IMG/VR virus record: IMGVR_UViG_3300029983_000007
Coordinates: 1-64,000 of that record
Reading direction: 5' to 3' (one strand)
DNA: 64,000 nucleotides
The translations under genes and the position numbers were made by a program. This document shows positions 15,995-61,560 of the stretch, piece by piece (position 1 is the stretch's first letter; each line of letters opens with the position of its first letter). The notes beneath the pieces are model-generated. The model saw only the letters and a list, made by a program, of their open reading frames with translations. It did not search any database and had not been told where the DNA came from.

Positions 15995-16270
15995 TTATAA
16001 GTTATATTTTTTTGATGATAGATGTATTTTTATTTCAGGTATTGCATTTAAGTCTACAATTTCTTCTGTTACTTTTTTTATCCACATATTATTGTCATAT
16101 CCTTTCATACATAAATAACAGTTAACAATTTCATCTAAATCAAATGGATTTGCATCAGGTTCAATTTCTTCTGAATCTCCATTTTTATCAATTTTCATTA
16201 GTTTATATTCAGGATCATATATAACTGGGTCAATTATATTTTCAAATTTTTCAAATTTTCTAATTTCCAT
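15995..16270 (-). CDS. Putative virion-packaged protein (CTS-like N-terminus, KKYNL C-terminus)
   Basis: MEIRKFEKFE...SSKKYNL. Confidence 0.55.
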   Translation of the reverse strand: MEIRKFEKFENIIDPVIYDPEYKLMKIDKNGDSEEIEPDANPFDLDEIVNCYLCMKGYDNNMWIKKVTEEIVDLNAIPEIKIHLSSKKYNL

Positions 16271-16272
16271 AT

Positions 16273-16527
16273 TTAATTATTATGTTTATTATAATATTTC
16301 GAAACAGTAGGATTGAAGAAATTACGTACAATTAAGTTAGATTCTATTGTATAAACTAATAATTTTTTAAGTTTATCAAGAAATGTGCTTGTTGTTTCAT
16401 TTTGAAACATTAAGTTAGATAATGATTTTGTCATTAATTCATCTTCATAATCAAAACCTTTTTCAATATTATCATTTATATGTTTTAAATCATATAATTC
16501 TTTAATTTGCATATCTTTTTCTATCAT
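16273..16527 (-). CDS. Hypothetical protein
   Basis: ORF track. Confidence 0.5.
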   Translation of the reverse strand: MIEKDMQIKELYDLKHINDNIEKGFDYEDELMTKSLSNLMFQNETTSTFLDKLKKLLVYTIESNLIVRNFFNPTVSKYYNKHNN

Positions 16528-16529
16528 AG

Positions 16530-17069
16530 TTAAATATTGAATTTTTTTGTTGCGTCATAAGATTCTATGTCATTTATGAAATATATTAATAATTGATATT
16601 CATCTTTATTGAATGTGTAATCCCTGCTACGATTGAATACATCATTGTCTGTTATTCCTATTTCTAATGCATCATTTCCAGTTTCAGTATAAGTATAAAA
16701 ATCAACATATTCAGAATCTTTACATAAATTATTAAATTTTAGATATTCAGTGATCCATACAAATGTATCATTTCTATCAGATATTATTTTTATATAATTA
16801 TTTATTCCATTTTCCTTTAAATGTTTCTTATATTCTATCATTCTATTTTTTGATATTTCAAATTCTTCTTCATTTTCTATGCTATCAGTATATGCTATCA
16901 TATTACCATCCCAAAAATCAGTTATTTTAACTATATCTTCTATTTCCTCATATATTTTCAAATATTCAATTGTATATTCTAGTAATTCATCATATCTATC
17001 TACAATTTTAGATAATTTATCTTCCTGAATTGTACTTTCATTTAACTGAATAAATCTTTTAATTATCAT
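16530..17069 (-). CDS. Putative virion-packaged protein (CTS-like N-terminus, KKFNI C-terminus)
   Basis: MIIKRFIQLNE...ATKKFNI. Confidence 0.55.
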   Translation of the reverse strand: MIIKRFIQLNESTIQEDKLSKIVDRYDELLEYTIEYLKIYEEIEDIVKITDFWDGNMIAYTDSIENEEEFEISKNRMIEYKKHLKENGINNYIKIISDRNDTFVWITEYLKFNNLCKDSEYVDFYTYTETGNDALEIGITDNDVFNRSRDYTFNKDEYQLLIYFINDIESYDATKKFNI

Positions 17070-17677
17070 TCTGTTAATTTATTCTTTTTATCTGTCCAAA
17101 TATAATAACCATTGAATTCATTGTCATATACCATATTACCTAGTGTAGATATCACATTTAATGTTGTATCAAATGTTATAGTTTGTTGAAAAGAATATTT
17201 GACTTTTTCTTTATCAATAAAAGACAATGGTTTCATCATTATACCAAAAACATTTAATGAATCAGGTATATCTGAATAAAATTCTGATAACGCAAAAGTT
17301 ACTAAATTTTCTCTGATGTTTTCAATATCTTCTTTATCAAAAATACTACATTTGAATACTACTTTTTCAGTACCTAAAATGTCACCTGACATATCATTGA
17401 TCTTATATTGATGTTTCTTTTTGTCCATTAAATCAATATATTGATCATATGTTTTAAAATAATCAACAAGAGTTTTTGTGTATTTAGGTGTTGCTAATTT
17501 TATGTTATAAAAAAATTCATCTAATTTTACATTAGGTATTTGAAACTCATATAATGGAGACCATTCTGTAAATTTTTTTATACTATTTATTTCATTTATC
17601 ATTTTTGTGTAATTATTTTTTATATCAAAGACCTTCACCTGCATAACTATCAGCTTCATCCGCCTGTGCTTCTTCAC
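17066..17677 (-). CDS. Hypothetical protein
   Basis: ORF track; true start probably downstream of the annotated one. Confidence 0.55.
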   Translation of the reverse strand: MKKHRRMKLIVMQVKVFDIKNNYTKMINEINSIKKFTEWSPLYEFQIPNVKLDEFFYNIKLATPKYTKTLVDYFKTYDQYIDLMDKKKHQYKINDMSGDILGTEKVVFKCSIFDKEDIENIRENLVTFALSEFYSDIPDSLNVFGIMMKPLSFIDKEKVKYSFQQTITFDTTLNVISTLGNMVYDNEFNGYYIWTDKKNKLTE

Positions 17678-17858
17678 GAAGTATCATTATATATTCTTTC
17701 TCTTTTGTTGACAATTTGTTAAACCAATTTATTATATTTAGTTTTTCTTCTTTAGATAAATCAGAATTCCAGTTGAATAATCCACTGCCATTGATTGAAT
17801 ATTCTTCTTCCTGAGTAATATTTTCATTTGTTGTACTATATTCTCTAACATTTTTCAT
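17625..17858 (-). CDS. Hypothetical protein
   Basis: ORF track; starts MKNVREYSTTNE. Confidence 0.5.
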   Translation of the reverse strand: MKNVREYSTTNENITQEEEYSINGSGLFNWNSDLSKEEKLNIINWFNKLSTKEKEYIMILREEAQADEADSYAGEGL

Positions 17859-17859
17859 T

Positions 17860-18546
17860 TTATTTATTTATTATTTTTAGGAAATCTTTGTATTGTTCAT
17901 CTGATAATTTAAGTTCTCCACTAGTGTCACCTCCATTTGATGTATAAGAAATATTTAACATTTTTTCATTTTTTAATAATCTAATACTAAAATCTATGTT
18001 ATTTAAACTAAATCTTATAAAAAATCTATCATTCAAGTCTATTATTGGAATTTTATCTAATTTCTTTAATTCATCTAGTATATTTAAAACTAATAATTTA
18101 TTGAATTCTGAAGTTTTGCTTCTTATTTTTTTGATATTATTAGAAATGAATACTGATTTTAAAAATTTATATAAAAAGAATCCAATTGCAAAAGATGTTA
18201 TTAATCCTAATGATTCATTTTTGTAATCATAAGAATTAAACTCTTTTATGTGTGTTAGTTTTTTATTTTTATATACATCATCTTTATCTTTTGCTATTAA
18301 GTCATCTAATATATCATTTAATACGCTTCTCACTAAATTCTTATACTCAGTATCATCTGTTATTATATTAGCACCTTTGTTTTTTATATCTTCTAAAACT
18401 TCATTAAACCTTTTTGAGTTTCTGTAATATTTTTTTAATGATTGAGGAGTTGCACCTTTATTTATATAAAAATTTATAATAGGATATAATTCAGAGAATA
18501 TATCTGATTTCGCTTGCTTAGTTAAGTTAGAATTTTCCATATTCAT
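17860..18546 (-). CDS. Hypothetical protein with internal CTS-like motif and one TM segment
   Basis: Internal LTHIKEFNSYDYKNE followed by a hydrophobic helix. Confidence 0.55.
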   Translation of the reverse strand: MNMENSNLTKQAKSDIFSELYPIINFYINKGATPQSLKKYYRNSKRFNEVLEDIKNKGANIITDDTEYKNLVRSVLNDILDDLIAKDKDDVYKNKKLTHIKEFNSYDYKNESLGLITSFAIGFFLYKFLKSVFISNNIKKIRSKTSEFNKLLVLNILDELKKLDKIPIIDLNDRFFIRFSLNNIDFSIRLLKNEKMLNISYTSNGGDTSGELKLSDEQYKDFLKIINK

Positions 18547-18592
18547 ATATATTAATATTTATTTTCTAAAAATATTTTTTATATATAATTAC

Positions 18593-18958
18593 ATGATAAC
18601 TAACTTTAAACTATTTGAAGATTATGATAAAAAATTAGTTTGGAATATACCAGTAAAAATGCCAGATTTTTATTTGTCATTGAAAAAAATTGGAATGTCA
18701 GATAGAGTAATTAAAGATTGGTTAAGGCTTCGTCAGAATAAAGTGTTTTCAACTAAAGATACTAATACTAATTTTGAAACTATTTCATTAGTAAAAGATT
18801 CAGAACAAGAAGACTCATATACATGGTATTGGTATCCAACATCAGAAAGTGATGAATATACTATATATATGGGTAAATTAGAATGTACTCCAGAAGAAAT
18901 TCATAAATACTATGATGACATTGAATTTAAAAAAAATATTACCAAATTTAATATATGA
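18593..18958 (+). CDS. Putative virion-packaged protein
   Basis: MITNFKLFE...ITKFNI; preceded by TTTTTTTATATATAA. Confidence 0.6.
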   Translation: MITNFKLFEDYDKKLVWNIPVKMPDFYLSLKKIGMSDRVIKDWLRLRQNKVFSTKDTNTNFETISLVKDSEQEDSYTWYWYPTSESDEYTIYMGKLECTPEEIHKYYDDIEFKKNITKFNI

Positions 18959-19266
18959 TAACTAACTTTAAACTATTTGAAACAATTAATGTAGGTAAAC
19001 CAGAAATTGGAGATTTTGTGATATGTAATGAAGATGATTCTACGTCTGAGGTTACGTATTTTACCTCAAATAATATAGGTAAATATATTAAGTATAATTA
19101 TGACATTGAATATCATTATGCTATATATTATGAAGATACACCAAAAGATTTAGGTGTATATTTTTCAAACGGTGAAAGAAATATGACATTAGATGAAATA
19201 AAATATTGGTCAAAAAATAAAGAAGAATTGGAATATATAATTAAAACAAATAAATTCAATTTATGA
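18955..19266 (+). CDS. Putative virion-packaged SH3-like protein
   Basis: MITNFKLFE...PEIGDFVIC...TNKFNL. Confidence 0.6.
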   Translation: MITNFKLFETINVGKPEIGDFVICNEDDSTSEVTYFTSNNIGKYIKYNYDIEYHYAIYYEDTPKDLGVYFSNGERNMTLDEIKYWSKNKEELEYIIKTNKFNL

Positions 19267-30006: not shown

Positions 30007-30342
30007 ATGATAATACATAAATTTAATGAAAATAATAACGAAGATTATGATGATTTTGTGAATAAAGTGAAAACTTTATTTTTAGAATTGTGGGATGATA
30101 AAATAGGAATTTCAAATTTTAAAATTGATACAAATGTTCAATATAATGTAAGTTTTAAAATTGGCTATAATTCAGTTACAAATAAAAATTTTACAGAATA
30201 TAATGAATTGTTTAAAATATTAAACAATTCTGGTCCAGAATTTCAATTCATTTCTGGTACTATGTATGCAAAGATAACTAATTTTAGTAAACTAATTGAA
30301 GATATGAAACTATTATTAAATTCAAAAAAATTTAATTTATAA
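30007..30342 (+). CDS. Putative virion-packaged protein
   Basis: MIIHKFNE...SKKFNL; paralog of the next gene (LFL.LWDD). Confidence 0.6.
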   Translation: MIIHKFNENNNEDYDDFVNKVKTLFLELWDDKIGISNFKIDTNVQYNVSFKIGYNSVTNKNFTEYNELFKILNNSGPEFQFISGTMYAKITNFSKLIEDMKLLLNSKKFNL

Positions 30343-30680
30343 TGGAAATAGATAGATTTAGAAATGAAGCAAAAATATTATCTAATGACACAAAAGAATT
30401 GTTTTTAGATTTGTGGGATGATACATTATTTCTAACTAAATTGTGTGTACAATCATATGTAGATACATCCAATAATATTTTTTATCAATTGTCTTGCTCA
30501 ATGCACAAATCTATTGATAAAGACACATATAATATTTATAAAACTTTATTTGATATTCTAGTTAGATGTGATGTTGATTTTAAGTTCGATAAAAATGAAT
30601 TATCAGCTCAATTTGAGGATATCAATACTTTTATAAAAGAAATGAAAACATTAAAAGATTCAAAAAAATTTAACATATAA
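30342..30680 (+). CDS. Putative virion-packaged protein
   Basis: MEIDRFRNE...SKKFNI. Confidence 0.6.
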   Translation: MEIDRFRNEAKILSNDTKELFLDLWDDTLFLTKLCVQSYVDTSNNIFYQLSCSMHKSIDKDTYNIYKTLFDILVRCDVDFKFDKNELSAQFEDINTFIKEMKTLKDSKKFNI

Positions 30681-35014: not shown

Positions 35015-35656
35015 ATGGAGATATTCAAATTCGGGAATTTTGTTATAAATGAAAATATATCATTAATTGATCATGACGGTATATTATTAATTGTTGACGT
35101 TCAATCTAATTTTAAAAAATATTTTCCTACTGATCCTAATGGATTTATTAAAAAAATAGACAAATATTGTTTAGATTTTCCATCAGATGACACAGGAAAA
35201 GGAGTTTATCAAATATGGGATTCAAATCAAGGATCTAAACCAACATACAAATTTAAAAATGAGATAGATTTAATTGAAAAAAAATATGGAGTCAAAAAAT
35301 TTTATTCTAAATATAAAGGGGGGTTTAAAGAATGGATAACACACATATTTGATAATAAAACATTAGAAGAATTCAAATCTAGAAATAATGTATTTAAAAA
35401 AGGTGATGCATTTAAGTTAAGGGATAAAAATGAATTTTTGATATATATAGGAAATAATCATCAATGGTTTTACGTTAATGAAGAATTGGTAGAATTATTT
35501 AAAAAATTAAGAAATAAAAAAGTTATAATATGTGGAGGAGCAGAAGATGAATGTTTAGATGACGTGTATATAGCATTAAAGTCGTTTAATGTTAATGTAA
35601 TTAAAAATCATCAATATATATATAGTGCAGAAACAGGTAACTATTTGAAGAAATAA
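35015..35656 (+). CDS. Isochorismatase/cysteine-hydrolase-like protein with CTS-like N-terminus
   Basis: ILLIVDVQ..F and VIICGGAEDECL. Confidence 0.6.
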   Translation: MEIFKFGNFVINENISLIDHDGILLIVDVQSNFKKYFPTDPNGFIKKIDKYCLDFPSDDTGKGVYQIWDSNQGSKPTYKFKNEIDLIEKKYGVKKFYSKYKGGFKEWITHIFDNKTLEEFKSRNNVFKKGDAFKLRDKNEFLIYIGNNHQWFYVNEELVELFKKLRNKKVIICGGAEDECLDDVYIALKSFNVNVIKNHQYIYSAETGNYLKK

Positions 35657-41525: not shown

Positions 41526-42293
41526 TTAATTCATTTTCTCAAATCTCCATTTAAAGTAATAATAGTCATTATTTTCTATATGGTAAGTATCTTCATTTAT
41601 CTTCATTATGATATATGGCTTATTGTTACTATTGATATTATATCCTAAAATTTCAACTACTTTGTTTTCGTTTATTTCAAATAGTTTGCCTATATTATCT
41701 TTTACCTTAGTTTCATTTTTCATATTTTTATAAAACCCTTTATCTGGTATGAACCATTTATCTAACTTTTTATAAAAATAATTACTCAATTTTAGTTTAT
41801 ATTCACTATCAAATCTGTATAAGTATTCTGGCTCGAAATATACTTCTGATTCAAGTGTTGGTCTTATTAAACCATTATAATTTCTGAATACGCCAAAATA
41901 TTCTTCTTTATCAAATTCAAATGATATAAATACATCTAATTTTAAACTACTATTTTCATATATTCTTAAAATTTTAATGTTGTCATACAATTCAATATCT
42001 TCCAAAAATGGATTACTATCTTTATAGATTAAGTTATTTTGACCACGTAAGCCTTTTATTACTCTATCTAAGTTAGATACTAAGCCAGATTGACGGGCAT
42101 AAAAATCAGTATATGGACTATCCTGATAGTTATAATACGATGAGCTTGGATCCTGAGCAAAGGCAAAGTCTCCTCCTCCTCCTGCAGTACCCATTGGTTC
42201 AATCCCGAATTGAAATTGTTGAAATTCTGAATCCTCTGTTATTAGGTTTGCTTCATTAAAAAATGAATATCTACTATATTTTAATACTTTCAT
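41526..42293 (-). CDS. Hypothetical (putative virion) protein
   Basis: Starts MKVLKYSRYSFFNE. Confidence 0.6.
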   Translation of the reverse strand: MKVLKYSRYSFFNEANLITEDSEFQQFQFGIEPMGTAGGGGDFAFAQDPSSSYYNYQDSPYTDFYARQSGLVSNLDRVIKGLRGQNNLIYKDSNPFLEDIELYDNIKILRIYENSSLKLDVFISFEFDKEEYFGVFRNYNGLIRPTLESEVYFEPEYLYRFDSEYKLKLSNYFYKKLDKWFIPDKGFYKNMKNETKVKDNIGKLFEINENKVVEILGYNINSNNKPYIIMKINEDTYHIENNDYYYFKWRFEKMN

Positions 42294-42381
42294 ACTGTTA
42301 TATATAAATTTTTCGATTTATTATTTTAATATATATTTAAAGGAATAAATAAAATTAATATATAAAGATAAAAGAATATTT

Positions 42382-42876: not shown

Positions 42877-44847
42877 ATGGAATTAAAAAATATTCAAAAT
42901 CGTAAAGATTTTATTAAAATGAATGAAATTTTTGGTGGAACTCAAGGTGGAGTTGGCGCTAGAGATGGATTTGCAAATAATTCTGAATTGAAAGATACTT
43001 ATTTAGGAAAACTAATGAATGGTTTATTTAAAGGATTGAGTTGGTTATGGAGAAAAAGTAAAGAAAATTTCATTATTAACAGAATGATTGCAAAATTAAT
43101 TAATGAATTAGTTCGTGGAGTTATAATATATTGCTTCATAAAAAAAATTGATTTACAATCAGGTAAAATATCAGAATCAGAATCTGAATCAGTAAACAAA
43201 GAAAATGTAGAATCAAATGATAACAAAGTTAATTTTGATGTAATTAAAAAGGATATTGGAGAGGATTTGTTTAATAGAATGATGAGCGGTAATGAAGATG
43301 AAGATGTTGAAGAATTGATTAAAAAATCAGGAATAAAAACAGATAATGATAGAACGATAATAAAAAATATCAATGACGTAAAAGAAGTTGTAGATAAGGA
43401 AGATTATAATAGAATGGAAACTGAAACATACGAATTTTTGAAGAAAAATATTCAATATTTTGACGAAATTAAGAAAAATGCAGATGACGGCGATGAAGAT
43501 TCTAAAAAGAAACTTGATATGATAAAAGCTATCTATGTCAATTATGAAATAGTTAGAAAATTAAAAGAAAAAGAAACAAAAAATAAAGGAGCATTAGGAG
43601 AAGCATCATTAACAAATGAGGCATTAACTAAACTGAGAACAGATTCTAGTGCTGGTAAAATTGGATTAGGATCAAATTCTCCAACTATAAGTCCTGCTAT
43701 CAATCCAAAATCACTTATTAAAAGTTTTGTTAGTGTTAAAAGCATTATAACTAAAAGAGATCAAGACAAATATAAAGAGCGTGAAGCTGATTTTTCTCTA
43801 CCAATATCAGATATAAATTTAGCTGAAATAGAAAAAACAATTAATAGAAAAACTGATGTTATGAAAGAAGTTTCATCAAATGTAAATTCTGAAAGTTTGA
43901 AAGTAATTCAACTTACTGTGAAAGAATTATTAGTTTCAAATAGTCAAGAACAAAATGTAGAAAAAGAAAAATTAAAATTGAGATGGGATAAAGAATTATC
44001 AAAGGTGTATGCTAGTTTTTCTTTACTGATGGATATACCAAGTGTTGATATAAGAGATGGAAACTACGGATCAGGCTTAAATTTATCAGGCTCAACATCA
44101 AGGGTATATAAAGAAGTTAAACAAATTGGTTCTGATACAGAATCATTGAAAATTGGCGATCAATTGGGTGATTCATTAAATCCAGTTGAAACTAAAATAG
44201 GTGGATTGGAAGGAAATTGGCAATATTGTATTTTTGATTATCAAGGAATAAATTATAATGCTACAATAGCACCAATTAGTTCTGCACCATCAAATGGATT
44301 TTATATGTTTATGGTTACGCAGACAATTAAGAAAATAGAAAATAATGTTGTCACATCAAATTTTAAAGAATTTGAGAAAATTTTTACATCTACAAATTTT
44401 GCAAATGTTAATCTTAAAAAAGATGATGTAGTTAATGTATACTTCATGTTAAAGAAAGGTGCTAGTTTACCATCAGGTACAAGTGCAAATACAAATGGGC
44501 AAAGCAATAGTTTTTTAGTTTTTAATAATTATATTAGTTCTGACAATAAAACCAATAAATTGTTTCTATGTGAGCCATCAGGAGAGAAATTTATAGCTGA
44601 TTTGGATTTAAGTAATCCTAGTAATACAATTGATGGCGTAATAGCTAGTAATTATCAAAAAGATAAAATTAGTATTAAGAGCTGTCGTAAGTTTGATAGA
44701 GTTAAATTTTGGTGGAAAGCATTAAATCTTATAACTGATACTAATGATAAAAAATTCTGTGCTTTTAAAGATGATGAAAGTAATCCTGTATTTTGGAATG
44801 ATAAAGTAGTATTAGATAATCTAAAGAAAATTGCATCTAAATTTTAA
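42877..44847 (+). CDS. Large putative internal head protein
   Basis: Starts MELKNIQNRKDFIKMNE; 656 aa. Confidence 0.55.
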   Translation: MELKNIQNRKDFIKMNEIFGGTQGGVGARDGFANNSELKDTYLGKLMNGLFKGLSWLWRKSKENFIINRMIAKLINELVRGVIIYCFIKKIDLQSGKISESESESVNKENVESNDNKVNFDVIKKDIGEDLFNRMMSGNEDEDVEELIKKSGIKTDNDRTIIKNINDVKEVVDKEDYNRMETETYEFLKKNIQYFDEIKKNADDGDEDSKKKLDMIKAIYVNYEIVRKLKEKETKNKGALGEASLTNEALTKLRTDSSAGKIGLGSNSPTISPAINPKSLIKSFVSVKSIITKRDQDKYKEREADFSLPISDINLAEIEKTINRKTDVMKEVSSNVNSESLKVIQLTVKELLVSNSQEQNVEKEKLKLRWDKELSKVYASFSLLMDIPSVDIRDGNYGSGLNLSGSTSRVYKEVKQIGSDTESLKIGDQLGDSLNPVETKIGGLEGNWQYCIFDYQGINYNATIAPISSAPSNGFYMFMVTQTIKKIENNVVTSNFKEFEKIFTSTNFANVNLKKDDVVNVYFMLKKGASLPSGTSANTNGQSNSFLVFNNYISSDNKTNKLFLCEPSGEKFIADLDLSNPSNTIDGVIASNYQKDKISIKSCRKFDRVKFWWKALNLITDTNDKKFCAFKDDESNPVFWNDKVVLDNLKKIASKF

Positions 44848-44866: not shown

Positions 44867-45958
44867 ATGAAAAAAACATATTCAGATTTCATATTAAATG
44901 AACAAGATTCATCAACAGCAGTTGCTCCTAGTGCAACTACAAAAGTAGAGCCAACTAATACTGCTGAAACAACAAAAACAATCAATCCTGATGTACCTGG
45001 TGAAGAAAAAACAACAGTTGATCAAGAACAAGATGATACAAAAAAAGATGACAGTCAAAAAGATGAAATAATATCAAATTTTGATGAAACAAAAGGAGAA
45101 GAGATTATCAAAGAAATTCGTGATTTTTGGATAAATAAAATAATAACAGAAAATGAATTAAATTTTTCTGGTAACACATTAAAGATTCTTTATGTCAAAC
45201 AAAAAAATTCAAAATATATTAAATACAAAGATACTATTAATGAAGTTATTGCATCAAAAACAGCAGAATGTAATCAAAGATTGATTGATTCTGATGTTAA
45301 CGATATGTTTTTTTATGTTGATTATCCTATTAAACTTATCAAAAAAGGATTGACAGGCAAACCTAGTATTGTTTCATTCTTTAATAGACAAACTGATGAA
45401 AAATATAACTCTAAAATAAAAGAAATAATAAGTAATAATGAATATGCTGATAGCTCAGGATTACCTGAATATCAGAAAAAATTAGTATTGGGTGAATTCG
45501 AATTATTAACAGACATAGATGAAAAACATACATATATGTATGATAATCAGCCAGTTGAATTTACATTCGAAAATGGTGCAATAAAAACAATGGTCAATGC
45601 AGATACAAATAATTCAATTAGTTTAGTAGATAAAAACGACAAAAATATATTTGATATCACAAAATTGAAAAAATATGATGAATCAGCCAAATCAGATATA
45701 ACAACAAACACTACAACTGTTGCTGCTACCACAACAAACACAACAACTGTTGCTGCTACCACAACAAACACAACAACTGTTGCTGCTACCACAACAAACA
45801 CTACAACTGTTGCTGCTACCACAACAAACACTACAACTATTGCTGCTACCACAACAAACACAACAACTATTGCTGTGAGTAAGAAAAATGTTATGAATAG
45901 TAAAGATTTTAAAAATAATAAAATTTTAAATAAAAATAAGAATAAAAACACATTTTAA
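44867..45958 (+). CDS. Putative internal head protein with Thr-rich repeats
   Basis: MKKTYSDFILNE resembles T4 CTS MKTYQEFIAE; TTNTTTVAAT repeats. Confidence 0.6.
   Translation: MKKTYSDFILNEQDSSTAVAPSATTKVEPTNTAETTKTINPDVPGEEKTTVDQEQDDTKKDDSQKDEIISNFDETKGEEIIKEIRDFWINKIITENELNFSGNTLKILYVKQKNSKYIKYKDTINEVIASKTAECNQRLIDSDVNDMFFYVDYPIKLIKKGLTGKPSIVSFFNRQTDEKYNSKIKEIISNNEYADSSGLPEYQKKLVLGEFELLTDIDEKHTYMYDNQPVEFTFENGAIKTMVNADTNNSISLVDKNDKNIFDITKLKKYDESAKSDITTNTTTVAATTTNTTTVAATTTNTTTVAATTTNTTTVAATTTNTTTIAATTTNTTTIAVSKKNVMNSKDFKNNKILNKNKNKNTF
45701..45875 (+). repeat. 30-bp coding tandem repeat, about 5.8 copies
   Basis: ACAACAAACAC(T/A)ACAACT(G/A)TTGCTGCTACC. Confidence 0.9.
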
Positions 45959-45972: not shown

Positions 45973-46407
45973 ATGAAACATATAAACAATTATGAATTTT
46001 TTTTAGAAAATGGTACGAGTAATCCTAACACACCACAAGGTTATGTAAATTCATTATCAAACAAAACAAAATTAAAACCAATCCAAAATAACAACAATCA
46101 ACAGATAAACAAACAGAAACCTACAGATGAAGTAGATAATATATTACAAGACACTGAGCAACAGAAACAAAATATTGTGGCAAAGAAAGATGTTATAGAA
46201 AAAGGTTTACTTCAGAATATTCAAGATTTAGAACCTGAAAATCAAAAAGTGGTAAAAACACAAGTACAGGATTATAAAAACCAAGTACAAGAATTTGATA
46301 AAACTGTACAGCAAATAGATAAATTAAATAAGACACTTAAAAAATCTAATGTTAATGTAAATGCAAACATAAACATGAAAAATGCAAGAAAACAAAATAA
46401 TTTTTAA
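45973..46407 (+). CDS. Putative virion coiled-coil protein
   Basis: Starts MKHINNYEFFLE; Gln/Asn-rich. Confidence 0.6.
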   Translation: MKHINNYEFFLENGTSNPNTPQGYVNSLSNKTKLKPIQNNNNQQINKQKPTDEVDNILQDTEQQKQNIVAKKDVIEKGLLQNIQDLEPENQKVVKTQVQDYKNQVQEFDKTVQQIDKLNKTLKKSNVNVNANINMKNARKQNNF

Positions 46408-53687: not shown

Positions 53688-54884
53688 TCAAATATCTTTA
53701 TTTGGCGTACGAATATATCCATTATTTATATGATTTTTAAATAATTTTTCTAATAACACTTTTTTACGAGCTGCATTATATGCGCCCACACTATTTTTAG
53801 TAAATTCGCATATGTTGTCATATTTATTAGCTTCTTCTTGTAATGTTTCTTCTGTCCAATATCCAAGTTTAACTTGTTTTTCTGAATAACCTTGATTTTT
53901 GTGATTTTTAAATAATTCATCTAACATTTTTCTACTTTTGGCTGCAATATAAGCAGAACTATTTTCTCTAAATTCTTTTCTTGTTTTATATTTATTAGCT
54001 TCTTCTTGTAAAGATTTTATTGTCCATTTTAATCCACCTGATCCTAATGATCCAGCTTTGACTGAATTTATCATAATCCATTCATTATTTTCATAAACAT
54101 CAACCCAATATATTTCCTTTTTTATAGCGTCATTAGAATTTAAATTTTCTTCTAATAATTTATACTTTGGAAGAGGAATATTATTTATTTTACAAAAATT
54201 AATCAATGATTCTTTTTCACTAAATAAATGTTCTTTGTCTCGTCTATTTATATTGTTTGTTAATCCAACATAAGCATTATTATAATTTGTGAATTCATAA
54301 ACATATATAACATAACTATTTTCTTTCCATTCAATTATATTCCGACGTCCTTGATTGTCGTGATTTTTAAATAATTCATCTATTAATCTATTTTTATACG
54401 CAATTTTATAACCTGTGCTTTTTTTCTGAAATTCTCCTCTTGTTATATATTTATTAGCTTCTTCTTGTAATCTATCAAACGTCCAATAACCTTTTTTATT
54501 TACTTTAATATCAAATCCGTTATTAGAATGATTTTTGAATAATTCATCTATTAATTTTTTACTTAATGCTGCACTATATGCAGATTTGTTTTTACGAAAT
54601 TCTCCTCTTGTTTTATGTTTGTTTGCTTCTTCTTGAAGTTTTTCTCTATTCCAATGCCCAATAGTCATTTTACCTTCTTCGTAACCTTTATTTATGTGAT
54701 TTTTAAATAAATCATCAATTAATTTAATTTTAGATGCCGCTATATAAGCGGAGTTGCATTTTTCTCTAAATTCTTTTCGATTTTCGTATTTATCAGCTTC
54801 TTCTTGCAATTTGTCAATAGTCCAATAACCAATAGGTTTACGACTTTCATTTATAAAAATATTATAATTTTTACTTATTTTCAT
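53688..54884 (-). CDS. GIY-YIG homing endonuclease with five helical repeats
   Basis: VIYVYEF...YVGLTNN..RR..EH; 5x W..E.LQEEA.KY..R.EF...LFKNH. Confidence 0.8.
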   Translation of the reverse strand: MKISKNYNIFINESRKPIGYWTIDKLQEEADKYENRKEFREKCNSAYIAASKIKLIDDLFKNHINKGYEEGKMTIGHWNREKLQEEANKHKTRGEFRKNKSAYSAALSKKLIDELFKNHSNNGFDIKVNKKGYWTFDRLQEEANKYITRGEFQKKSTGYKIAYKNRLIDELFKNHDNQGRRNIIEWKENSYVIYVYEFTNYNNAYVGLTNNINRRDKEHLFSEKESLINFCKINNIPLPKYKLLEENLNSNDAIKKEIYWVDVYENNEWIMINSVKAGSLGSGGLKWTIKSLQEEANKYKTRKEFRENSSAYIAAKSRKMLDELFKNHKNQGYSEKQVKLGYWTEETLQEEANKYDNICEFTKNSVGAYNAARKKVLLEKLFKNHINNGYIRTPNKDI

Positions 54885-56498: not shown

Positions 56499-56514
56499 GT
56501 ATTTATTTTTGTTG

Positions 56515-56591
56515 TTGGTGAAGTGGGACTTGAACCCACATGTGACCAATTAACCTTTCTACTACTTATCAGGCAGAGGGTATATTCACCA
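56515..56591 (-). ncRNA. D-armless tRNA-like RNA, anticodon GAT (Ile)
   Basis: TGGTGAA/TTCACCA; CTGC-CTGATAA-GTAG; GTGGG-TTCAAGT-CCCAC. Confidence 0.7.
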
Positions 56592-56602
56592 ATGTTATTT
56601 AG

Positions 56603-56676
56603 TAGTCTCGGTGAGACTTGAACTCACGATTTATTGCTTATCAGGCAATTGCTCTAACCAACTGAACTACAAGACT
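56603..56676 (-). tRNA. tRNA-Ile(GAT)
   Basis: Canonical cloverleaf; ATTGC-CTGATAA-GCAAT. Confidence 0.93.
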
Positions 56677-56716
56677 ATTTTAGTTTATTATTTTTTTATT
56701 GGTATGATACTATTTG

Positions 56717-56797
56717 AGCACATTGACAGACTCGAACTGTCGGTGTTTATATCTCGCTTTTGCAGAACGATGCCTTCGCCACTCAGACCAAATGTGC
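56717..56797 (-). tRNA. tRNA-Cys(GCA)
   Basis: GCACATT/AATGTGC; U73 discriminator; loop CTGCAAA; 12-nt variable region. Confidence 0.9.
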
Positions 56798-56806
56798 ATT
56801 TCTATT

Positions 56807-57682: not shown

Positions 57683-57751
57683 AAGTCGAACTTTTTATCA
57701 CTATATATAAAAAGTTCGATATCAATTTTATTAATATTTATTTATTTTTAG

Positions 57752-57838
57752 TACCGTTAGGTGGAATCGAACCACCGCAATCTATAAGACTGAAAGGTTT
57801 ATGAGACCTCCGTAATAACCAACTCTACTCATAACGGT
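57752..57838 (-). tRNA. tRNA with CAT anticodon (elongator Met or Ile2), long variable arm
   Basis: ACCGTTA/TAACGGT; GAGGT-CTCATAA-ACCTT; variable stem AGTC/GATT. Confidence 0.8.
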
Positions 57839-57911
57839 ATATTTATGTTTAAATATATAGTTAATATCATACTAATAGTATGATATTGTTAAATATTTTA
57901 AACTATTTTTG

Positions 57912-57985
57912 CGGGAAAGTTGAGATTTGAACTCAAGACACTTTGCTTAACAGGCAAACGCTCTAACCAACTGAGCTACATTCCC
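57912..57985 (-). tRNA. tRNA-Asn(GTT)
   Basis: Canonical; TTTGC-CTGTTAA-GCAAA. Confidence 0.93.
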
Positions 57986-57990
57986 TTATG

Positions 57991-58078
57991 CGCACTGGGT
58001 AGGATTTGAACCTACGGTGGAGATTACTCTCACTGGATTAACAGTCCAGACTTTTCGACCAACTAAAGCAACCAATGC
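57991..58078 (-). tRNA. tRNA-Asn(GTT), long variable arm
   Basis: GCATTGG/CCAGTGC; CTGGA-CTGTTAA-TCCAG; variable stem GAG-TAAT-CTC. Confidence 0.88.
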
Positions 58079-58080
58079 AT

Positions 58081-58117
58081 ATAATAACTTAATAATAACT
58101 TAATAATAACTTAATAA
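58081..58117. repeat. 11-bp tandem repeat (3 copies) in a tRNA spacer
   Basis: ATAATAACTTA x3. Confidence 0.85.
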
Positions 58118-58119
58118 AG

Positions 58120-58194
58120 CGGACTATAACGGTTACGGTCCGTTAATTTTACTTGAGTGACAGTCAAGTTCTCCACCAAGGAGCCTAATAATCC
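58120..58194 (-). tRNA. tRNA-Asp(GTC) with non-canonical T-loop
   Basis: GGATTAT/ATAGTCC; CTTGA-CTGTCAC-TCAAG; AACGG-ACCGTAA-CCGTT. Confidence 0.8.
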
Positions 58195-58201
58195 ATTTTT
58201 G

Positions 58202-58286
58202 TACTGGTAACGGGGTTCGAACCCGTGAGGAAATTTCTTTCCACAACATTGAAAGTGTTGCGACCTAGCCACTAGTCCATACCAGC
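58202..58286 (-). tRNA. tRNA-Glu(TTC), long variable arm
   Basis: GCTGGTA/TACCAGT; CAACA-CTTTCAA-TGTTG; variable stem GGAAA-GAAA-TTTCC. Confidence 0.88.
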
Positions 58287-58883: not shown

Positions 58884-59510
58884 TTAATTTTTTCTGTTTC
58901 TATGATACAATTTTAGTGATTCTGAAATCTTTATTTTAGTTTCATCTGAAATTTTACTTTTATTTACTGTTTTATATGAATCAGACATTTTTTTCTTACT
59001 TTCATCTGATACAAAATGATTTTTTAATTTATTAGATATTTTATTTCTTTCTTCTTCAGATTCAAATCTTTTTTTAGCTGAATCTGACAATTTCTTTCTT
59101 GTTTCTTCTGATACAATTCTACATTTTAAAGATTCTGAAATCTTTTTCTTCGATTCATCAGAAAAAATTTTACCTATTGATGATTCTTTTAATTTATTTT
59201 TAGTTTCATCACTATGTTTTTTACCTTTAAAATGTGGACCACCTTCTCCTCCAATTCCTATATTATAATTTCTTTTTGATTTTATAAAATCTTCTGTTAT
59301 AATTTCTTTTTCTTTTTTATTCATTTCTGATTCATTATCAAAAATAAACAAAATTTCTTTTTTGAAATTTTCCTTACCATGCAATTTAATTGCATTTTCT
59401 AAGGCTTTACCAGAACCATAATAAGAATCATTTGTATTTTCAGTTTGATGCTTTCCAATATAATACTTATCATTTAATATATTTGTTGTTTTATAAATTG
59501 TATAGTACAA
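58884..59510 (-). CDS. GIY-YIG homing endonuclease with NUMOD3 repeats
   Basis: YTIYKTTN..N.KYYIGKH...Y.GSG; repeated S.ET..K.S.S; TTG start. Confidence 0.85.
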   Translation of the reverse strand: MYYTIYKTTNILNDKYYIGKHQTENTNDSYYGSGKALENAIKLHGKENFKKEILFIFDNESEMNKKEKEIITEDFIKSKRNYNIGIGGEGGPHFKGKKHSDETKNKLKESSIGKIFSDESKKKISESLKCRIVSEETRKKLSDSAKKRFESEEERNKISNKLKNHFVSDESKKKMSDSYKTVNKSKISDETKIKISESLKLYHRNRKN

Positions 59511-60107: not shown

Positions 60108-60174
60108 TGTTTTTCAATCTTTTTTATATATTATTGAAAAAATATCATTTTTTTCTACTTTTAATATGATAGTG

Positions 60175-60206
60175 CAAAATTACAATAAAGTTTTCATTCT
60201 ACCAAA
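60175..60206 (-). promoter_or_regulatory. Second tandem Bacteroidota-type promoter
   Basis: TTTGGTAGA...N20...TAATTTTG; shares a 21-nt repeat with the promoter at 60076. Confidence 0.7.
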
Positions 60207-60589
60207 TCTTTTGATTGTTTTTCTTCAATATGTTTTTTAAATAGTTTATTAAATAATTTATAAATATTACTGAATTGTATATCATTGTAGAAATTTGTTT
60301 GTTTTTCAATTTCTTCTTTAGATTTAGTTTTTAAATCTGTTGGACTTAATCCTGTAATTGATCACCTTTCATACTCACTATTCATGTGTTTTGAAAAGTT
60401 TTCATCTATTGTGGTTACTCCTGCTCTGGTTGAACCACCAAAATGATGGGCTTTTACTGTATCACCTTCATTGAACATAGTACCATAAAAAGGTCTTGCT
60501 ATTGTACCATCAGCATTGACATATAATCCTAAGAAATCTTTTCTTATTTTTACTATTTTAGACATAACCTTATTGTTGTATTGACTCAA
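60194..60589 (-). pseudogene. Gene with a single internal TGA at 60362-60364
   Basis: The ORF-track protein ends YER*, but the frame stays open for 55 more codons (SITGLSPTDLK...DLVE*). Confidence 0.5.
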
Positions 60590-60803
60590 TAACTATCGAA
60601 TTTTCATAACTTTCTAATTCTTCATAATATTCTTGTTCATCACATTGATTATCTTCACAATATTCTTCTTTTGATTCACCCATATATTCTTTTATGAATT
60701 CTGTTTTTGCAGTATTTGCATCTTTTGGTGTATCAAATATTCCTATGAATATATTATCTGACATTGTACCAGTACTTGTAACGTAATCTACTTTGTATTT
60801 CAT
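60570..60803 (-). CDS. Small acidic hypothetical protein
   Basis: ORF track; promoter-like site at 60826-60857. Confidence 0.55.
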   Translation of the reverse strand: MKYKVDYVTSTGTMSDNIFIGIFDTPKDANTAKTEFIKEYMGESKEEYCEDNQCDEQEYYEELESYENSIVIESIQQ

Positions 60804-60938
60804 ATTAAATTATTTTTAATTTGTGTAAAAATACAATAATTTTTTCATTTTACCAAATGTTTATCAACTTATTTAAAAAAATAACCTTTCTTTTCAATGA
60901 AGAAAAGAAAGGTTTATGTATTTCTATTTATTGTTTTT

Positions 60939-61118
60939 TTACATTGAAAGTTCTTTCTTTTTCTTTGTATAGAATGAGAAACCACCATATTCTTTATCAA
61001 TACCAGGAATTACCATGAAATTTTTAAGATTAACACTTTCTTTTACTGAATAATATTCTTCTTTTGTTAAAAAAAATACTTTTGTAGATTTTGCTGAGTT
61101 ACTTGAGTTGGTTGTCAT
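60939..61118 (-). CDS. Hypothetical protein (59 aa)
   Basis: Manual translation MTTNSSNSAKSTKVFFLTKEEYYSVKE...; behind the promoter at 61166-61197. Confidence 0.55.
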   Translation of the reverse strand: MTTNSSNSAKSTKVFFLTKEEYYSVKESVNLKNFMVIPGIDKEYGGFSFYTKKKKELSM

Positions 61119-61165
61119 AATGTTTAATTTAAATTGTTTAAATGATTGTTGTTTTAATTTCTACA

Positions 61166-61197
61166 CAAAGATACTTCTGTTTTGAATATCTACCAAA
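61166..61197 (-). promoter_or_regulatory. Bacteroidota-type promoter
   Basis: TTTGGTAGA...N20...TATCTTTG. Confidence 0.75.
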
Positions 61198-61317
61198 TAT
61201 TTTAGTGTTTTTTAATGATTTAGATATATTTTGACTTATATTTTATATTTTAGTAACATTATAAATAAAAAATCAGTTTTATAATATAAATATATACTAA
61301 AAAAAGATATTATAAAT

Positions 61318-61560
61318 ATGAAAAATATTAAAAATTTTGTAGATTATAAATCTATGAATGAAAAATGGAAAGATGATGTTAAAGTTAAGCACACTGGCGA
61401 ACATTCTGGTAAGACTATTGAAGAGTTAGAAAGTGAATTATCATCACTTAAGAAAAGAAGCAAAAAATATCAAGAATCAGGTAAAGATGTACCAAAGAGT
61501 ATCATTGATCAAGAGCAAGAAATAAATTTTGCAATTCGAGCAAAAAAACATTGGAAATAA
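61318..61560 (+). CDS. Small putative virion protein
   Basis: Starts MKNIKNFVDYKSMNE; AT-rich TATATA motif upstream. Confidence 0.6.
   Translation: MKNIKNFVDYKSMNEKWKDDVKVKHTGEHSGKTIEELESELSSLKKRSKKYQESGKDVPKSIIDQEQEINFAIRAKKHWK

Follow-up and report, generated by a model that had tools for sequence, protein, structure and literature searches.

In a genome fragment of an uncultured, Bacteroidota-type peat virus, a huge phage of the Mahaphage type, about one gene in five codes for a small protein with two short terminal tags, an N-terminal leader and a fixed C-terminal ending, and the best reading of the leader is a prohead-targeting role like that of the capsid targeting sequence (CTS) of phage T4, which, on sequence comparison, may equally well prove right or wrong. 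This phage is the source of the window analysed here, a stretch of 64,000 nucleotides (positions 1 to 64,000 of IMG/VR record IMGVR_UViG_3300029983_000007), and its genome contains a Bacteroidota-like promoter motif; whole-contig counts refer to the 330,208-bp contig with 544 open reading frame (ORF) starts. The original prediction described T4-like leaders on about 16 proteins and treated them as one class; the C-terminal ending is absent from it and had gone unnoticed. Fifteen of the 16 quoted starts indeed head real ORFs. Yet, the set comprises about 100 proteins in the 330-kb fragment rather than 16, and the quoted starts fall into two classes: eight two-tag proteins, which combine the leader with a K[FY]N[IL] ending, and seven leader-only proteins, which lack that ending. 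The remaining start, MEIKRFNE, heads only a 28-codon ORF (28418-28504, minus strand), out of frame before an 86-codon remnant of a DPPY methyltransferase (28191-28451), and is probably a broken gene.

The leader comprises the N-terminal 8-13 residues and follows the general pattern M-K-x-hydrophobic-K/x-x-F/Y-(0-4 residues)-E. As M-K-[YHT]-[IL]-K-x-[FY]-E or MITNFK[IL]FE it starts about 100 ORFs across the contig. A strict pattern matches 56 of the 544 ORF starts, compared to about 6 matches expected at internal positions and about 9 (maximum 16) with residues 2-20 shuffled, and a broader pattern yields 116 matches versus 25 expected; these excesses lie well beyond chance and show the leader to be N-terminus-specific. 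The CTS of the T4 internal proteins (IPs) was reportedly defined by Mullaney and Black. IPII and IPIII start with MKTYQEFIAE and IPI with MKTFKEF, and the phage leaders adopt the same register: M1, K2, a hydrophobic residue at position 4, an aromatic one at position 7, then Glu. Targeting in T4 needs residues 4 and 7, processing needs residues 8 and 10, and gp21 cleaves after L/I-x-E (PMC9026906). In the contig leaders, the hydrophobic residues are conserved at positions 4 and 7 as well.

The exact C-terminal ending K[FY]N[ILV] is found in 102-103 ORFs (19% of the genes of the whole contig) versus about one expected, and 87 proteins of the contig carry leader and tag together. The bodies between the two tags are small, acidic and of unrelated folds, and belong to about 76 BLAST families, which include ankyrin (11), LRR (2) and DMP19-like (1) proteins and an SH3-like family of 24 members. 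Among 150 family representatives, which are pairwise at most 50% identical, the K[FY]N[ILV] ending is kept in 137 and the leader in about 125. To judge from the spread over families, the tags are portable.

In the window, two two-tag ORFs lie on the minus strand: 15995..16270 (91 aa, starts MEIRKFE, ends KKYNL) and 16530..17069 (179 aa, starts MIIKRFIQLNE with an L-N-E end, ends KKFNI). A four-gene array on the plus strand opens with 18593..18958 (121 aa, MITNFKLFE to TKFNI), 5 nt upstream of which a TTATATATA motif is located (18579-18587). It is followed by 18955..19266 (plus strand, 103 aa, MITNFKLFE to NKFNL), the ATG of which overlaps the preceding stop codon (ATGA); its family comprises 2,446 clusters worldwide, and its body is an SH3-like barrel, for which Foldseek matched the PsaE and PWWP SH3-like folds. 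Downstream, 19263..19772 (plus strand, 169 aa, MIINFKIFE to KKFNL) codes for an ankyrin-repeat body (Pfam Ank_2 at 2.4e-9), and 19774..20442 (plus strand, 222 aa, MKHVKMYE to NKYNI) harbours a stretch resembling the DNA-mimic family DMP19 (Pfam, 3.7e-6, 27.9 bits, above cut-off, the matched stretch being short). The last two are 30007..30342 (plus strand, 111 aa, MIIHKFNE to KKFNL) and 30342..30680 (plus strand, 112 aa, MEIDRFRNE to KKFNI). In AlphaFold models of the SH3-like and the ankyrin protein (pLDDT 87 and 89.6 overall, respectively) the bodies reach values above 90, and the leader is the low-confidence part of both (residues 1-10, mean 61 and 48; residues 1-6 of the ankyrin protein below 50). 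The last three residues of the SH3-like model score 48, whilst the ankyrin model shows the tag at the end of a long helix, with a mean of 73 for its last block. The models suggest that the leader is peripheral to the folded body.

Leader-only ORFs are modestly enriched in the contig: a short-leader score matrix gives 9-11 matches versus about one expected, and a long T4-like pattern gives 7 versus 2. Within the window, 45973..46407 (plus strand, 144 aa, Q/N-rich and coiled-coil-like, starts MKHINNYEFFLE, short-leader score 7.8) passes both tests, and 53688..54884 (minus strand, 398 aa, starts MKISKNYNIFINE with an I-N-E end) passes the long-pattern test. The other five of the seven fail both, and therefore each, taken singly, may be a chance match in a K/N/I/F/E-rich proteome, which counts against prohead targeting. 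These are 35015..35656 (plus strand, 213 aa, starts MEIFKFGNFVINE with an I-N-E end, without a Pfam match, preceded by TTATATATA motifs at 34975-34983 and 35001-35009); 41526..42293 (minus strand, 255 aa, starts MKVLKYSRYSFFNE, without a Pfam or PHROG match, with a palindromic motif 5 nt upstream at 42298-42307); 42877..44847 (plus strand, 656 aa, starts MELKNIQNRKDFIKMNE with an M-N-E end, then IFGG), for which no family or fold was found; 44867..45958 (plus strand, 363 aa); and 61318..61560 (plus strand, 80 aa, starts MKNIKNFVDYKSMNE with an M-N-E end). ORF 44867-45958 starts with MKKTYSDFILNE, the closest match to the T4 CTS, and continues with an acidic disordered stretch; its sole PHROG match (tail, 3e-5) lies within Thr-rich repeats near the C-terminus and thus is probably a low-complexity artefact.

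Synonymous variation inside the motifs is at least as large as genome-wide (AAC 50% versus 13%, TTC 20% versus 17%, TAC 26% versus 11%, percentages computed from counts), and I/L are encoded by 5-8 different codons, which suggests that selection acts on the peptide and not on the DNA. This pattern bears on the highly improbable alternative that the conserved element is a DNA or RNA junction (...AAR TTY AAY WTA TGA AAT AY...), either a PeSL-like recombination site or a translational-coupling/promoter element, and the peptides are by-products. Such a junction would fit the fact that a sequence of about 40 nt can be recognised again in 98 IMG/VR stretches, the ATGA overlaps at half of the junctions and the promoter-motif-like sequence spelled by KFNI plus TAA. 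Moreover, 96 of the 102 last codons have A in the third position, which together with the preference for AAC among the Asn codons means that some nucleotide-level constraint exists. However, third codon positions vary freely where residues are kept, replacements are conservative (I/L, F/Y, A/T/S), and thousands of clusters have the motifs precisely at the ends of the proteins. Furthermore, of the C-terminal-tag genes, 24 have a leaderless gene next on the same strand and 11 have none on that strand, and the first genes of arrays bear the leader with only a promoter region upstream. The PeSL of T4-type phages are mobile regulatory cassettes (PMC2839356, PMC4122927); they likewise are conserved gene-boundary sequences in hyperplastic regions and could mediate shuffling, but consist of intergenic promoter and stem-loop DNA, whereas here coded residues are kept with free synonymous change.

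The two-tag genes form 30 runs with up to 10 head-to-tail copies, and 51 of them show ATGA stop/start overlaps. Such runs would also be expected if the ends had no signal function and were the terminal segments of one old, fast-evolving multigene family shaped by tandem duplication and gene conversion, in which case the CTS likeness would be a convergent or trivial feature of an AT-rich proteome. In favour of this reading, the members of the largest families are clearly paralogous, the most frequent residues are K, N, I, F, Y and E, and leader class shows no covariation with the residue at the C-terminus. Yet, ankyrin, LRR, SH3-like and DMP19-like bodies cannot all share homology, and the ends are fixed across the 150 divergent representatives while the bodies diverge. 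In addition, distant Mahaphage loci contain the leader without the C-terminal tag (43 matches versus 0.4 expected), and another form of the leader starts head-core genes of the cultured phage PAU, so that we consider a common multigene origin clearly unlikely.

The 330-kb record itself yielded no match for a portal, protease, capsid or terminase gene, which counts against prohead targeting, and it is therefore relatives that provide the link to a prohead protease. LR745206, which is syntenic with window genes 46414-51268, encodes a portal of the gp20 type (2.7e-57) and a gp23-type capsid protein (1.8e-26), besides a weak match to gp21. The peat fragment G014 has the same junction DNA as the contig and many two-tag genes; it was counted as a relative that may or may not belong to the genome of the 330-kb record, a further point against prohead targeting. 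G014 harbours a portal match (1e-62) and a gene for a 781-aa protease-scaffold fusion (Peptidase_S80 above cut-off, S77 at 1e-4), the scaffold part of which contains about 12 repeats with Y[IL]AE ([IL]AE), as in T4 gp22. By homology, the T4-type head genes of the lineage comprise those for the portal (gp20), the protease (gp21/S80-type) and the capsid protein (gp23).

Leader genes are found inside the head modules of these relatives, which together with the register match and the T4-type head genes supports the originally proposed likeness to the T4 CTS. In G014, a 102-aa two-tag gene is located between portal and protease, the place of gp67 and gp68 in T4. In many Mahaphage loci, the leader opens the NFACT-R gene that directly follows the capsid gene, and there it runs into E and then S or G. 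PAU and MA9V-2 are cultured relatives by capsid protein. In PAU, MKT[LI]xx[LIM][YF]E is the start of 16 genes, among them those annotated as scaffold and as internal capsid protein, and in MA9V-2 MKTFTYFINE opens a gene situated between the portal-like gene and that of the protease. N-terminal sequencing established the removal of about 65 residues from the PAU capsid protein (PMC5646251). The predicted capsid-protein maturation sites in the clade read I-N-E, M-N-E or L-M-E, then N, and match leader ends such as FILNE, FVINE, KMNE and SMNE; the M-N-E end of 42877-44847 equals the predicted site of G014 (HSMNE, then N).

A comparison of the leader motif with late-promoter presence, as originally suggested, supports the link: leader arrays have a promoter motif in common with head and tail genes. 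This motif, T[TA]ATATATA, lies ahead of two-tag arrays, of the window operon 42382-49395 and of tail-fibre genes, and in G014 ahead of the portal and protease genes. In the window, a TAATATATA motif (42356..42364, plus strand) is located 17 nt upstream of the operon head at 42382, with a second copy at 42327-42335. In G014, the distance from TAATATATA to the gene downstream is 19-22 nt for the 267-aa, two-tag and protease genes, 57 nt for the portal gene and 21-22 nt for large ORFs without annotation. The Bacteroidota-like TATCTTTG motif was never found before two-tag genes. The common motif suggests late-type expression.

Several observations argue against prohead targeting. To our knowledge, capsid cargo amounting to about 19% of all genes is without precedent. 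The gp21 cleavage context is missing from most two-tag proteins, whose leaders end with K-x-F-E and not with L/I-x-E: [LIM]-x-E occurs within the first 20 residues of 37% of the two-tag leaders versus 27-29% background, and 58 of 102 two-tag proteins lack it within the first 25 residues. The C-terminal tag, for its part, lacks an equivalent in T4 and shows no protease site nearby, and searches for an RNA run or a virion proteome found neither. The claim that the cargo includes enzymes likewise was not borne out, as the tagged bodies are ankyrin, LRR, SH3-like or DMP19-like binders or have no family, and none matches an enzyme family. The only enzyme-like match, GIY-YIG in 53688-54884, is below the Pfam cut-off and homing-endonuclease-like, again unfavourable for packaging. 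Moreover, two-tag bodies have a mean net charge of -3.9 versus -0.2 for other short proteins, and T4 internal proteins within the packaged DNA touch DNA via lysines (PMC3012670).

The acidic, mostly protein-binding bodies and the leaders without L/I-x-E would also suit a library of adaptors or decoys, in which the two tags tether binder domains to a non-capsid hub such as an AAA+ protease, a chaperone or a PDZ- or TPR-like receptor. The low-confidence, peripheral leader of both models is consistent with such a tether, and the F/Y-N-I/L end is a hydrophobic-x-hydrophobic-COOH terminus, which by analogy resembles C-terminal docking peptides, e.g., class II PDZ ligands or the SspB tail that binds ClpX. 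However, no candidate receptor was identified, with no Clp or PDZ protein among the top 25 families per set (105 larger proteins), and a hub of this kind leaves unexplained the register match to the T4 CTS, the leader genes inside head modules, the leader on the PAU scaffold and the late-type promoter. We regard it as an unlikely though not negligible candidate.

Compared with known systems, the closest parallel are the T4 IPs, whose CTS is reviewed in PMC9026906 and PMC3012670. Both sets share an extreme-N-terminal peptide of about ten residues among otherwise unrelated small proteins encoded by diverse, variable genes, and the contig's lineage has gp20, gp21 and gp23 homologues. In contrast, the three T4 ip genes lie at two loci and not in tandem arrays, and at least 100 carriers in 330 kb compare to three IPs plus a few core proteins. 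Furthermore, the contig leaders mostly comprise 8 residues with a K-x-F-E end, the bodies are acidic binders with a second, C-terminal tag, and packaging and cleavage are predictions. T4 Alt and gp21 have propeptides at both ends (PMC9026906) and thus are head-packaged proteins with processing or targeting segments at both termini, but their C-terminal segments are removed at L/I-x-E, whereas the contig tag is a fixed end hexapeptide, and no protease sites are enriched in the last 22 residues. The leaders of the Sphingomonas (Sphingobacterium) phage PAU, including those of small portal-to-capsid genes, and of the Chryseobacterium phage MA9V-2 share length and pattern with MITNFKLFE; unlike the contig, these phages lack the K[FY]N[IL] ending, bear the leader on far fewer proteins and show a clean L-x-E before A or S. 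No description of their leader was found in the literature. The giant phages phiKZ, 201phi2-1 and SPN3US pack dozens of head proteins, with Glu cleavage by a gp21-related (S80) protease, much as the present lineage would do, yet the propeptides of their ejection or inner-body proteins (PMC5694885, PMC10052503, PMC7411985) are long and dissimilar, with no common N-terminal decapeptide and no C-terminal tag. By analogy, the C-terminal tag may also be likened to encapsulin cargo-loading peptides, despite a different sequence. Encapsulin peptides are short C-terminal peptides on unrelated cargo, which dock inside an HK97-fold shell, and the phiKZ-type cleavage motif is S/A/G-x-E.

If prohead targeting is correct, the leader would be the lineage's own version of the T4 CTS, a short amphipathic peptide outside the folded body that makes a protein co-assemble with the prohead scaffolding core. 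Leaders ending with [ILM]-x-E would be removed by the gp21-family prohead protease. From the gene contexts, we infer scaffold binding, cleavage, packaging and injection: the tagged proteins would be made late, together with head and tail proteins, then travel inside the capsid and reach the host cell along with the DNA. The C-terminal tag, which consists of an amphipathic helix and then [A/T/S]-[N/K]-K-[F/Y]-N-[I/L], might be a second docking peptide for a head component. A subclade would have expanded this system to at least 100 small acidic proteins with SH3-like, ankyrin, LRR and DMP19-like binding modules as bodies, and the two tags probably mark a very large set of head-loaded proteins.

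Fifteen of the sixteen N-terminal starts listed in the original prediction head real open reading frames (ORFs); eight of these ORFs carry a further tag at the C-terminus (two-tag ORFs), and seven are leader-only. The sixteenth start, MEIKRFNE, heads merely a 28-codon ORF, which lies out of frame ahead of an 86-codon DPPY DNA methyltransferase remnant (window 28191-28504 (-)), and the two are probably a frameshifted or decayed gene. Genome-wide, a strict leader pattern is found at 56 ORF starts, compared to approximately 6 at internal positions and 9 with residues 2-20 shuffled, and a broad pattern at 116 starts versus 25 expected. The consensus reads M-K-[Y/H/T]-[I/L]-K-x-[F/Y]-E; a second form, nine residues long, reads M-I-T-x-F-K-[I/L]-[F/Y]-E, and the eight- and nine-residue forms substitute for each other among orthologues. 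Within the two-tag class, Lys at position 2 occurs in 72, Ile or Leu at position 4 in 70 and Phe or Tyr at position 7 in 74 of 102 proteins. Outside the two-tag class, seven ORFs of the contig, where two are expected, start with a long leader of the T4 type, [FY]-x-x-[FY]-[ILV]-x-E.

The leader set of the original prediction was thus real, but the C-terminal tag was overlooked. The first clue to this tag was that the gene upstream of a leader gene almost always ends in N-K-F-N-I/L, its stop codon overlapping the next ATG. An exact C-terminal K[FY]N[ILV] terminates 102-103 ORFs, compared to about one expected, and 87 of these also bear a leader. The complete C-terminal module comprises approximately 15 residues, namely an amphipathic, acidic segment that leads into [A/T/S]-[N/K]-K-[F/Y]-N-[I/L]. 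Two-tag genes occupy 13% of the DNA and are grouped into 30 runs, the longest of 10 genes, with an ATGA overlap at 51 junctions. The observed and expected counts of both ends exclude chance as the source of the class. The class of N-terminal leader does not covary with the C-terminal residue, and our literature searches found no description of either motif in huge phages.

Variants of these termini, as well as different terminal motifs, were also found. A more distant huge phage, represented by a 501-kb JGI contig of 23% GC (L003), shows this architecture too, except that its proteins end in KYNI[IL], with two residues after the Asn (e.g., 9624-10387 and 13020-14237). A gp4-like head-completion protein of approximately 175 amino acids, which harbours a TnsA-like endonuclease N domain and adjoins the portal region (loci L127-L201, e.g., L124 1748-2272(-)), ends in [KT]KFN[LV] and lacks a leader in 19 Mahaphage-type loci; its counterpart in the 634-kb relative LR745206 ends in KMFSV. 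A second expansion consists of 20 small proteins of about 70-90 amino acids with neither tag, several of which start with M[KR]YLCKK and none of which matched a Pfam family. Its genes are located at approximately 82-83 kb, 185-193 kb and 270-271 kb of the contig (e.g., 270160-270854), and the window ORFs 14010-14552 and 5392-5869 may be related to it. Finally, four adjacent paralogues at window 61590-63837 (-) share a different conserved N-terminus, MKIR[TKN]GFV[SG]NSSSSSF, likewise without any Pfam match.

Given the overlap of stop and start codons at so many junctions, the conserved unit might be a DNA-level junction element rather than a pair of peptides, an explanation that we consider very improbable. 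Within both motifs the residues are conserved, yet synonymous codon choice is no less variable than in the genome as a whole: AAC specifies 50% of Asn in the motifs versus 13% in the genome, TTC 20% versus 17% of Phe and TAC 26% versus 11% of Tyr; Ile and Leu are spelled by five to eight codons, and the small residue at position -6 is encoded by GCA, ACA or TCA. The tags are also found outside tag-to-leader junctions, as 24 genes with a C-terminal tag are followed on the same strand by a gene without leader, 11 have no same-strand follower at all, and array-first genes carry the leader with only a promoter region upstream. Moreover, a profile built on a member of the largest protein family retrieved 2,446 protein clusters of public metagenomes among 1.84 billion representatives; in the best 150 of them (mutual identity at most 50%), the ending K[FY]N[ILV] is present 137 times and a leader approximately 125 times. 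The synonymous variation, the tags at array ends and the conservation of the ends across diverged representatives all argue for selection on the peptides. A recombination cassette of the PeSL or boundary type was rejected along the same lines, since synonymous positions vary and tags also occur at array ends.

Beside the selection on peptides, the C-terminal tag retains a nucleotide-level bias throughout the contig (e.g., window 18940-18975 and 19250-19285), which includes the enrichment of AAC for Asn. Of 102 genes, 96 have a last sense codon with A in third position, and ATA is used 47 times compared to twice for ATT, though the genome uses both equally. The A-ending codon persists where the stop is TAA and the genes do not overlap, and KFNI followed by TAA spells a TWATATATA-like sequence 5 nt before the next ATG.

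Between the two tags, the proteins are highly diverse. After trimming the first 16 residues, BLAST groups the bodies of the leader proteins into approximately 76 families, of which 60 are singletons, and hence the leader resembles the capsid targeting sequence (CTS) of T4 internal proteins in being a short, extreme N-terminal peptide common to otherwise unrelated proteins. The largest family comprises 24 members with a predicted SH3-like barrel fold. That the conserved ends are simply the ends of such families, devoid of any signal function, appears distinctly unlikely. Among the two-tag bodies, Pfam identifies ankyrin families in 11 of 101, leucine-rich repeats (LRR) in two and a DMP19-like protein in one; examples are 19263-19772 (Ank_2, 38.1 bits versus a gathering threshold of 27.3) and 19774-20442 (DMP19, 27.9 bits versus a cut-off of 25, over a short stretch). 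AlphaFold models of an SH3-like (pLDDT 87) and an ankyrin protein (pLDDT 89.6) both assign low confidence to the leader. The last three residues of the SH3-like model are of low confidence too, and in the ankyrin model a long helix terminates in the C-terminal tag, the last block averaging 73. The median length of the two-tag proteins is about 124 amino acids, and they are acidic, their mean net charge being -3.9 compared to -0.2 for other short proteins. The cargo had been proposed to include enzymes, yet Pfam reveals no enzyme family among the tagged proteins.

The window also contains a gene cluster at 42382-49395, for which PHROGs and Pfam yielded no real match, a PDB sequence search no match and the ESM Atlas no usable match (ESM model pLDDT 0.37). 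From the gene sizes, we considered the cluster as sheath, tube, chaperone and tape-measure genes, and dropped this reading because the sequences are disordered, acidic or Q/N-rich.

The resemblance to the T4 CTS extends to the determinants of targeting and, for most two-tag leaders, stops at those of processing. In T4, residues 4 and 7 of the CTS account for targeting and residues 8 and 10 for processing, the two functions are separable, and the prohead protease gp21 cleaves after L/I-x-E (PMC9026906). Similar to the T4 sequences (NC_000866), the leader places hydrophobic or aromatic determinants at residues 4 and 7 after the initial M-K. In contrast to T4, the leader of the two-tag class does not usually end in L/I-x-E followed by a small residue. 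An [LIM]-x-E site lies within the first 20 residues in 37% of two-tag proteins versus a background of 27-29%, 58 of 102 lack any such site in the first 25 residues, the residue following the leader Glu is mostly K, N, S or D, and [LIM]-x-E is not enriched near the C-termini of two-tag proteins either. Leader ends of the L/I-x-E type do occur in the window (FILNE, FVINE, FINE (IFINE), QLNE (IQLNE), KMNE and SMNE), and the MITNFK[IL]FE variant, ending in L-F-E or I-F-E, fits a gp21-type site, whereas most eight-residue leaders (K-x-F-E) do not. The proposed T4 likeness therefore holds for the extreme N-terminal position and residues 4 and 7, but fails for the cleavage context of most two-tag leaders. 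The tags might instead dock the proteins to a hub other than the capsid, which we regard as rather unlikely; as targeting and processing are separable in T4, targeting without cleavage is conceivable here.

The window is the first part of a single IMG/VR contig of 330,208 bp (24% GC, about 544 ORFs; CheckV completeness 46%), which can be read without an alternative genetic code. We encountered neither sequence resembling human DNA nor genes for toxins or effectors of humans, animals or crops. One protein of the 330-kb contig recurs unchanged on a contig of 711,471 bp. The DNA of the 330-kb contig is present in at least a dozen peat metagenomes, with no RNA runs found to contain it. Its genes include those for gp32, a family B polymerase, type II topoisomerase, PhoH, RtcB, a Tad4-like protein and collagen-like tail fibres. 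The block of window genes 46414-51268 shares synteny with LR745206 (22-41% identity), and the capsid protein of LR745206 groups with those of 636-735-kb genomes (LR7565xx), Lak phages, PTm1 and PAU. Mahaphage genes cluster with 634-735-kb genomes and Lak phages, and a Bacteroidetes host has been predicted (Al-Shayeb et al. 2020, PMC7162821). By synteny with LR745206 and the grouping of the LR745206 capsid protein, rather than by a terminase or capsid protein of its own, the phage would thus belong to a Mahaphage-type lineage. Ribosomal protein S21, looked for as a mark of the published bS21 phage clade, is absent from the record.

Several further genes accompany this gene set. Seven tRNA genes (Tyr, Ile, Cys, Met, two Asn, Glu) cluster at window 56160-58286, interleaved with GIY-YIG homing-endonuclease-like genes (56807-57682(-), 58884-59510(-)), as segB likewise lies inside the tRNA cluster of T4. 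A 13-member DUF723/DUF4379/DUF7487 family, probably homing endonucleases, is scattered over the genome (window 1378-2676, 20915-23529 and 32349-33935; contig 110442, 150228, 169687 and others). Outside the window, Pfam family tables of the larger proteins list Tad4 (Thoeris inhibitor), Cas12f1-like TNB, Cas6 C-terminal, PARG, PPK2, NAPRTase and RtcB. Within the window, an M3 oligopeptidase F homologue (3.5e-63) is encoded at 12214-14013 and a "putative phage metallopeptidase" (9e-8) at 50016-50453, in the block conserved in LR745206; speculatively, the oligopeptidase might degrade leader or scaffold peptides once these have been cleaved off.

Neither portal, protease, capsid nor terminase genes were detected in the 46% complete record, as Pfam models for gp21/S77, gp23, HK97 capsid, S78 and Terminase_6C gave nothing usable. 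PF03420 is also absent from five large sister fragments, a model that is weak even where a protease is present, and the 120 top-ranking of the 2,115 homologues found for the LR745206 capsid protein do not include the 711-kb contig. Head genes were consequently studied in relatives. In LR745206, the gp20 portal (2.7e-57) and the gp23 capsid protein (1.8e-26) are present and a 707-aa ORF matches gp21 weakly, and the 80 loci kept around homologues of its capsid protein belong to other phages of approximately 30% GC. Among 20 sister fragments with the junction DNA pattern, a portal was found in a 96-kb peat fragment of 25% GC (G014). This fragment contains many two-tag genes and has no orthologous overlap with the 330-kb contig, and it is either another part of the same genome or a close relative.

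In the G014 head module, the portal gene is followed by a 267-aa gene, a 102-aa two-tag gene (starting MKVNRFNE, ending DKYNL), a protease-scaffold fusion of 781 aa and the first part of the capsid gene; in T4, the position of the two-tag gene is held by gp67/gp68. For the fusion (G014 93462-95807; L211 17146-19491), Peptidase_S80 scores above the cut-off and S77 reaches 1e-4. In the scaffold part, a 14-residue unit with the core YSEY[IL]AE is repeated about twelve times, and T4 gp22 is similarly dense in [IL]-A-E sites. As the repeat core resembles the T4 CTS core YQEFIAE, it suggests that the CTS mimics the scaffold's own repeat. A gene inserted between the G014 portal and protease genes is 86% DNA-identical to one copy of the DUF723/DUF4379/DUF7487 family.

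The capsid proteins of the clade possess predicted propeptide ends (arrow, cleavage) that align with the T4 gp23 site FLTE↓A, namely HSINE↓N in approximately 56 Mahaphage-type sequences, HSMNE↓N in G014, LTINE↓N in PTm1 and ALME↓N in PAU. By N-terminal sequencing, the mature PAU capsid protein comprises 520 of 585 residues (PMC5646251, Table 1), and its start falls within one residue of the L-M-E site.

Leader genes also populate the head modules of these relatives. In the 80 Mahaphage-type capsid loci (1,264 distinct ORFs), a short leader heads 43 ORFs versus 0.4 expected, nearly all without a KFN end, and an NFACT-R gene immediately following the capsid gene starts with a leader, then E, then S or G. 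The long T4-like leader heads 11 ORFs of G014 versus 0.9 expected. In the cultured phage PAU (JQ362498), 16 genes starting MKT[LI]xx[LIM][YF]E (0 in the control) are all located on one strand between 9332 and 175238, with clusters at 100.2-101.0, 107.4-107.8, 110.7-113.3 and 120.3-120.9 kb; the carriers include the annotated scaffold, an "internal capsid protein" and small genes between portal and capsid protein. Similarly, phage MA9V-2 has an MKTFTYFINE↓A gene between its portal-like and protease genes. A strict DNA pattern for MK[YH][IL]KxFE had no match in five cultured relatives, which use another variant. PAU is a ready experimental system for the leader, and such cultured relatives make the question directly testable.

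Upstream of genes, the sequence T[TA]ATATATA is overrepresented: one 9-mer occurs in 36 intergenic regions versus 2.9 expected, and the window has 43 versus 21. It precedes the two-tag arrays, the operon 42382-49395 and the tail-fibre genes, at sites including 18579-18587, 28558-28566 and 42356-42364. In G014 it lies 19-22 nt upstream of the 267-aa, two-tag and protease genes, 57 nt upstream of the portal gene and 21-22 nt upstream of large unannotated ORFs. Another abundant upstream 9-mer, TATCTTTGT, occurs at 20 sites versus 1.3 expected, and TATCTTTG is found approximately 20-25 nt upstream of other genes, never a two-tag gene, at 3851(-), 7428(-), 8367(+) and 37155(+); we take TATCTTTGT and TATCTTTG to resemble the Bacteroidota -7 promoter element. 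The two promoter-like classes suggest a switch between host polymerase and phage-specific transcription. From T[TA]ATATATA, common to tagged, tail-fibre and G014 portal and protease genes, we infer that the tagged genes may be expressed late.

Taken together, the sequence comparisons best support the reading that the leader is the capsid targeting sequence of this lineage and the tagged proteins are prohead cargo, to which we give an even chance; in this subclade, the leader class is hugely expanded and equipped with a second, C-terminal tag. Against this reading, most leaders lack a cleavage-site match, the putative cargo is acidic, so large a number of carriers is unprecedented and the record contains no head genes of its own. 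Only tentatively do we go further and propose that leader plus K[F/Y]N[I/L]-COOH constitute a dedicated two-signal system, which would load 100-200 small binder proteins into Mahaphage-type capsids for injection with the DNA. The library to be packed would consist of ankyrin, LRR, SH3-like and DNA-mimic-like proteins, and the C-terminal tag would represent a novel type of peptide that docks to the inside of the capsid or to the portal, comparable to the cargo-loading peptides of encapsulins. If correct, no virus would be known to possess a larger arsenal of ready-made effectors.

Huge phages harbour hundreds of genes of unknown function, and here about one fifth of the genes in 330 kb form a single class set by two terminal peptides. 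The T4 CTS principle is already in use for engineered protein delivery. Should the tags be head-loading signals, this principle would extend to Bacteroidota phages, much of the "dark matter" of huge phages would be injected binder or anti-defence proteins, and cargo would be predictable from sequence alone across the Mahaphage/Lak/PAU lineage. Should they serve another hub, they would nonetheless mark out a novel and very large family of modular proteins in phages.
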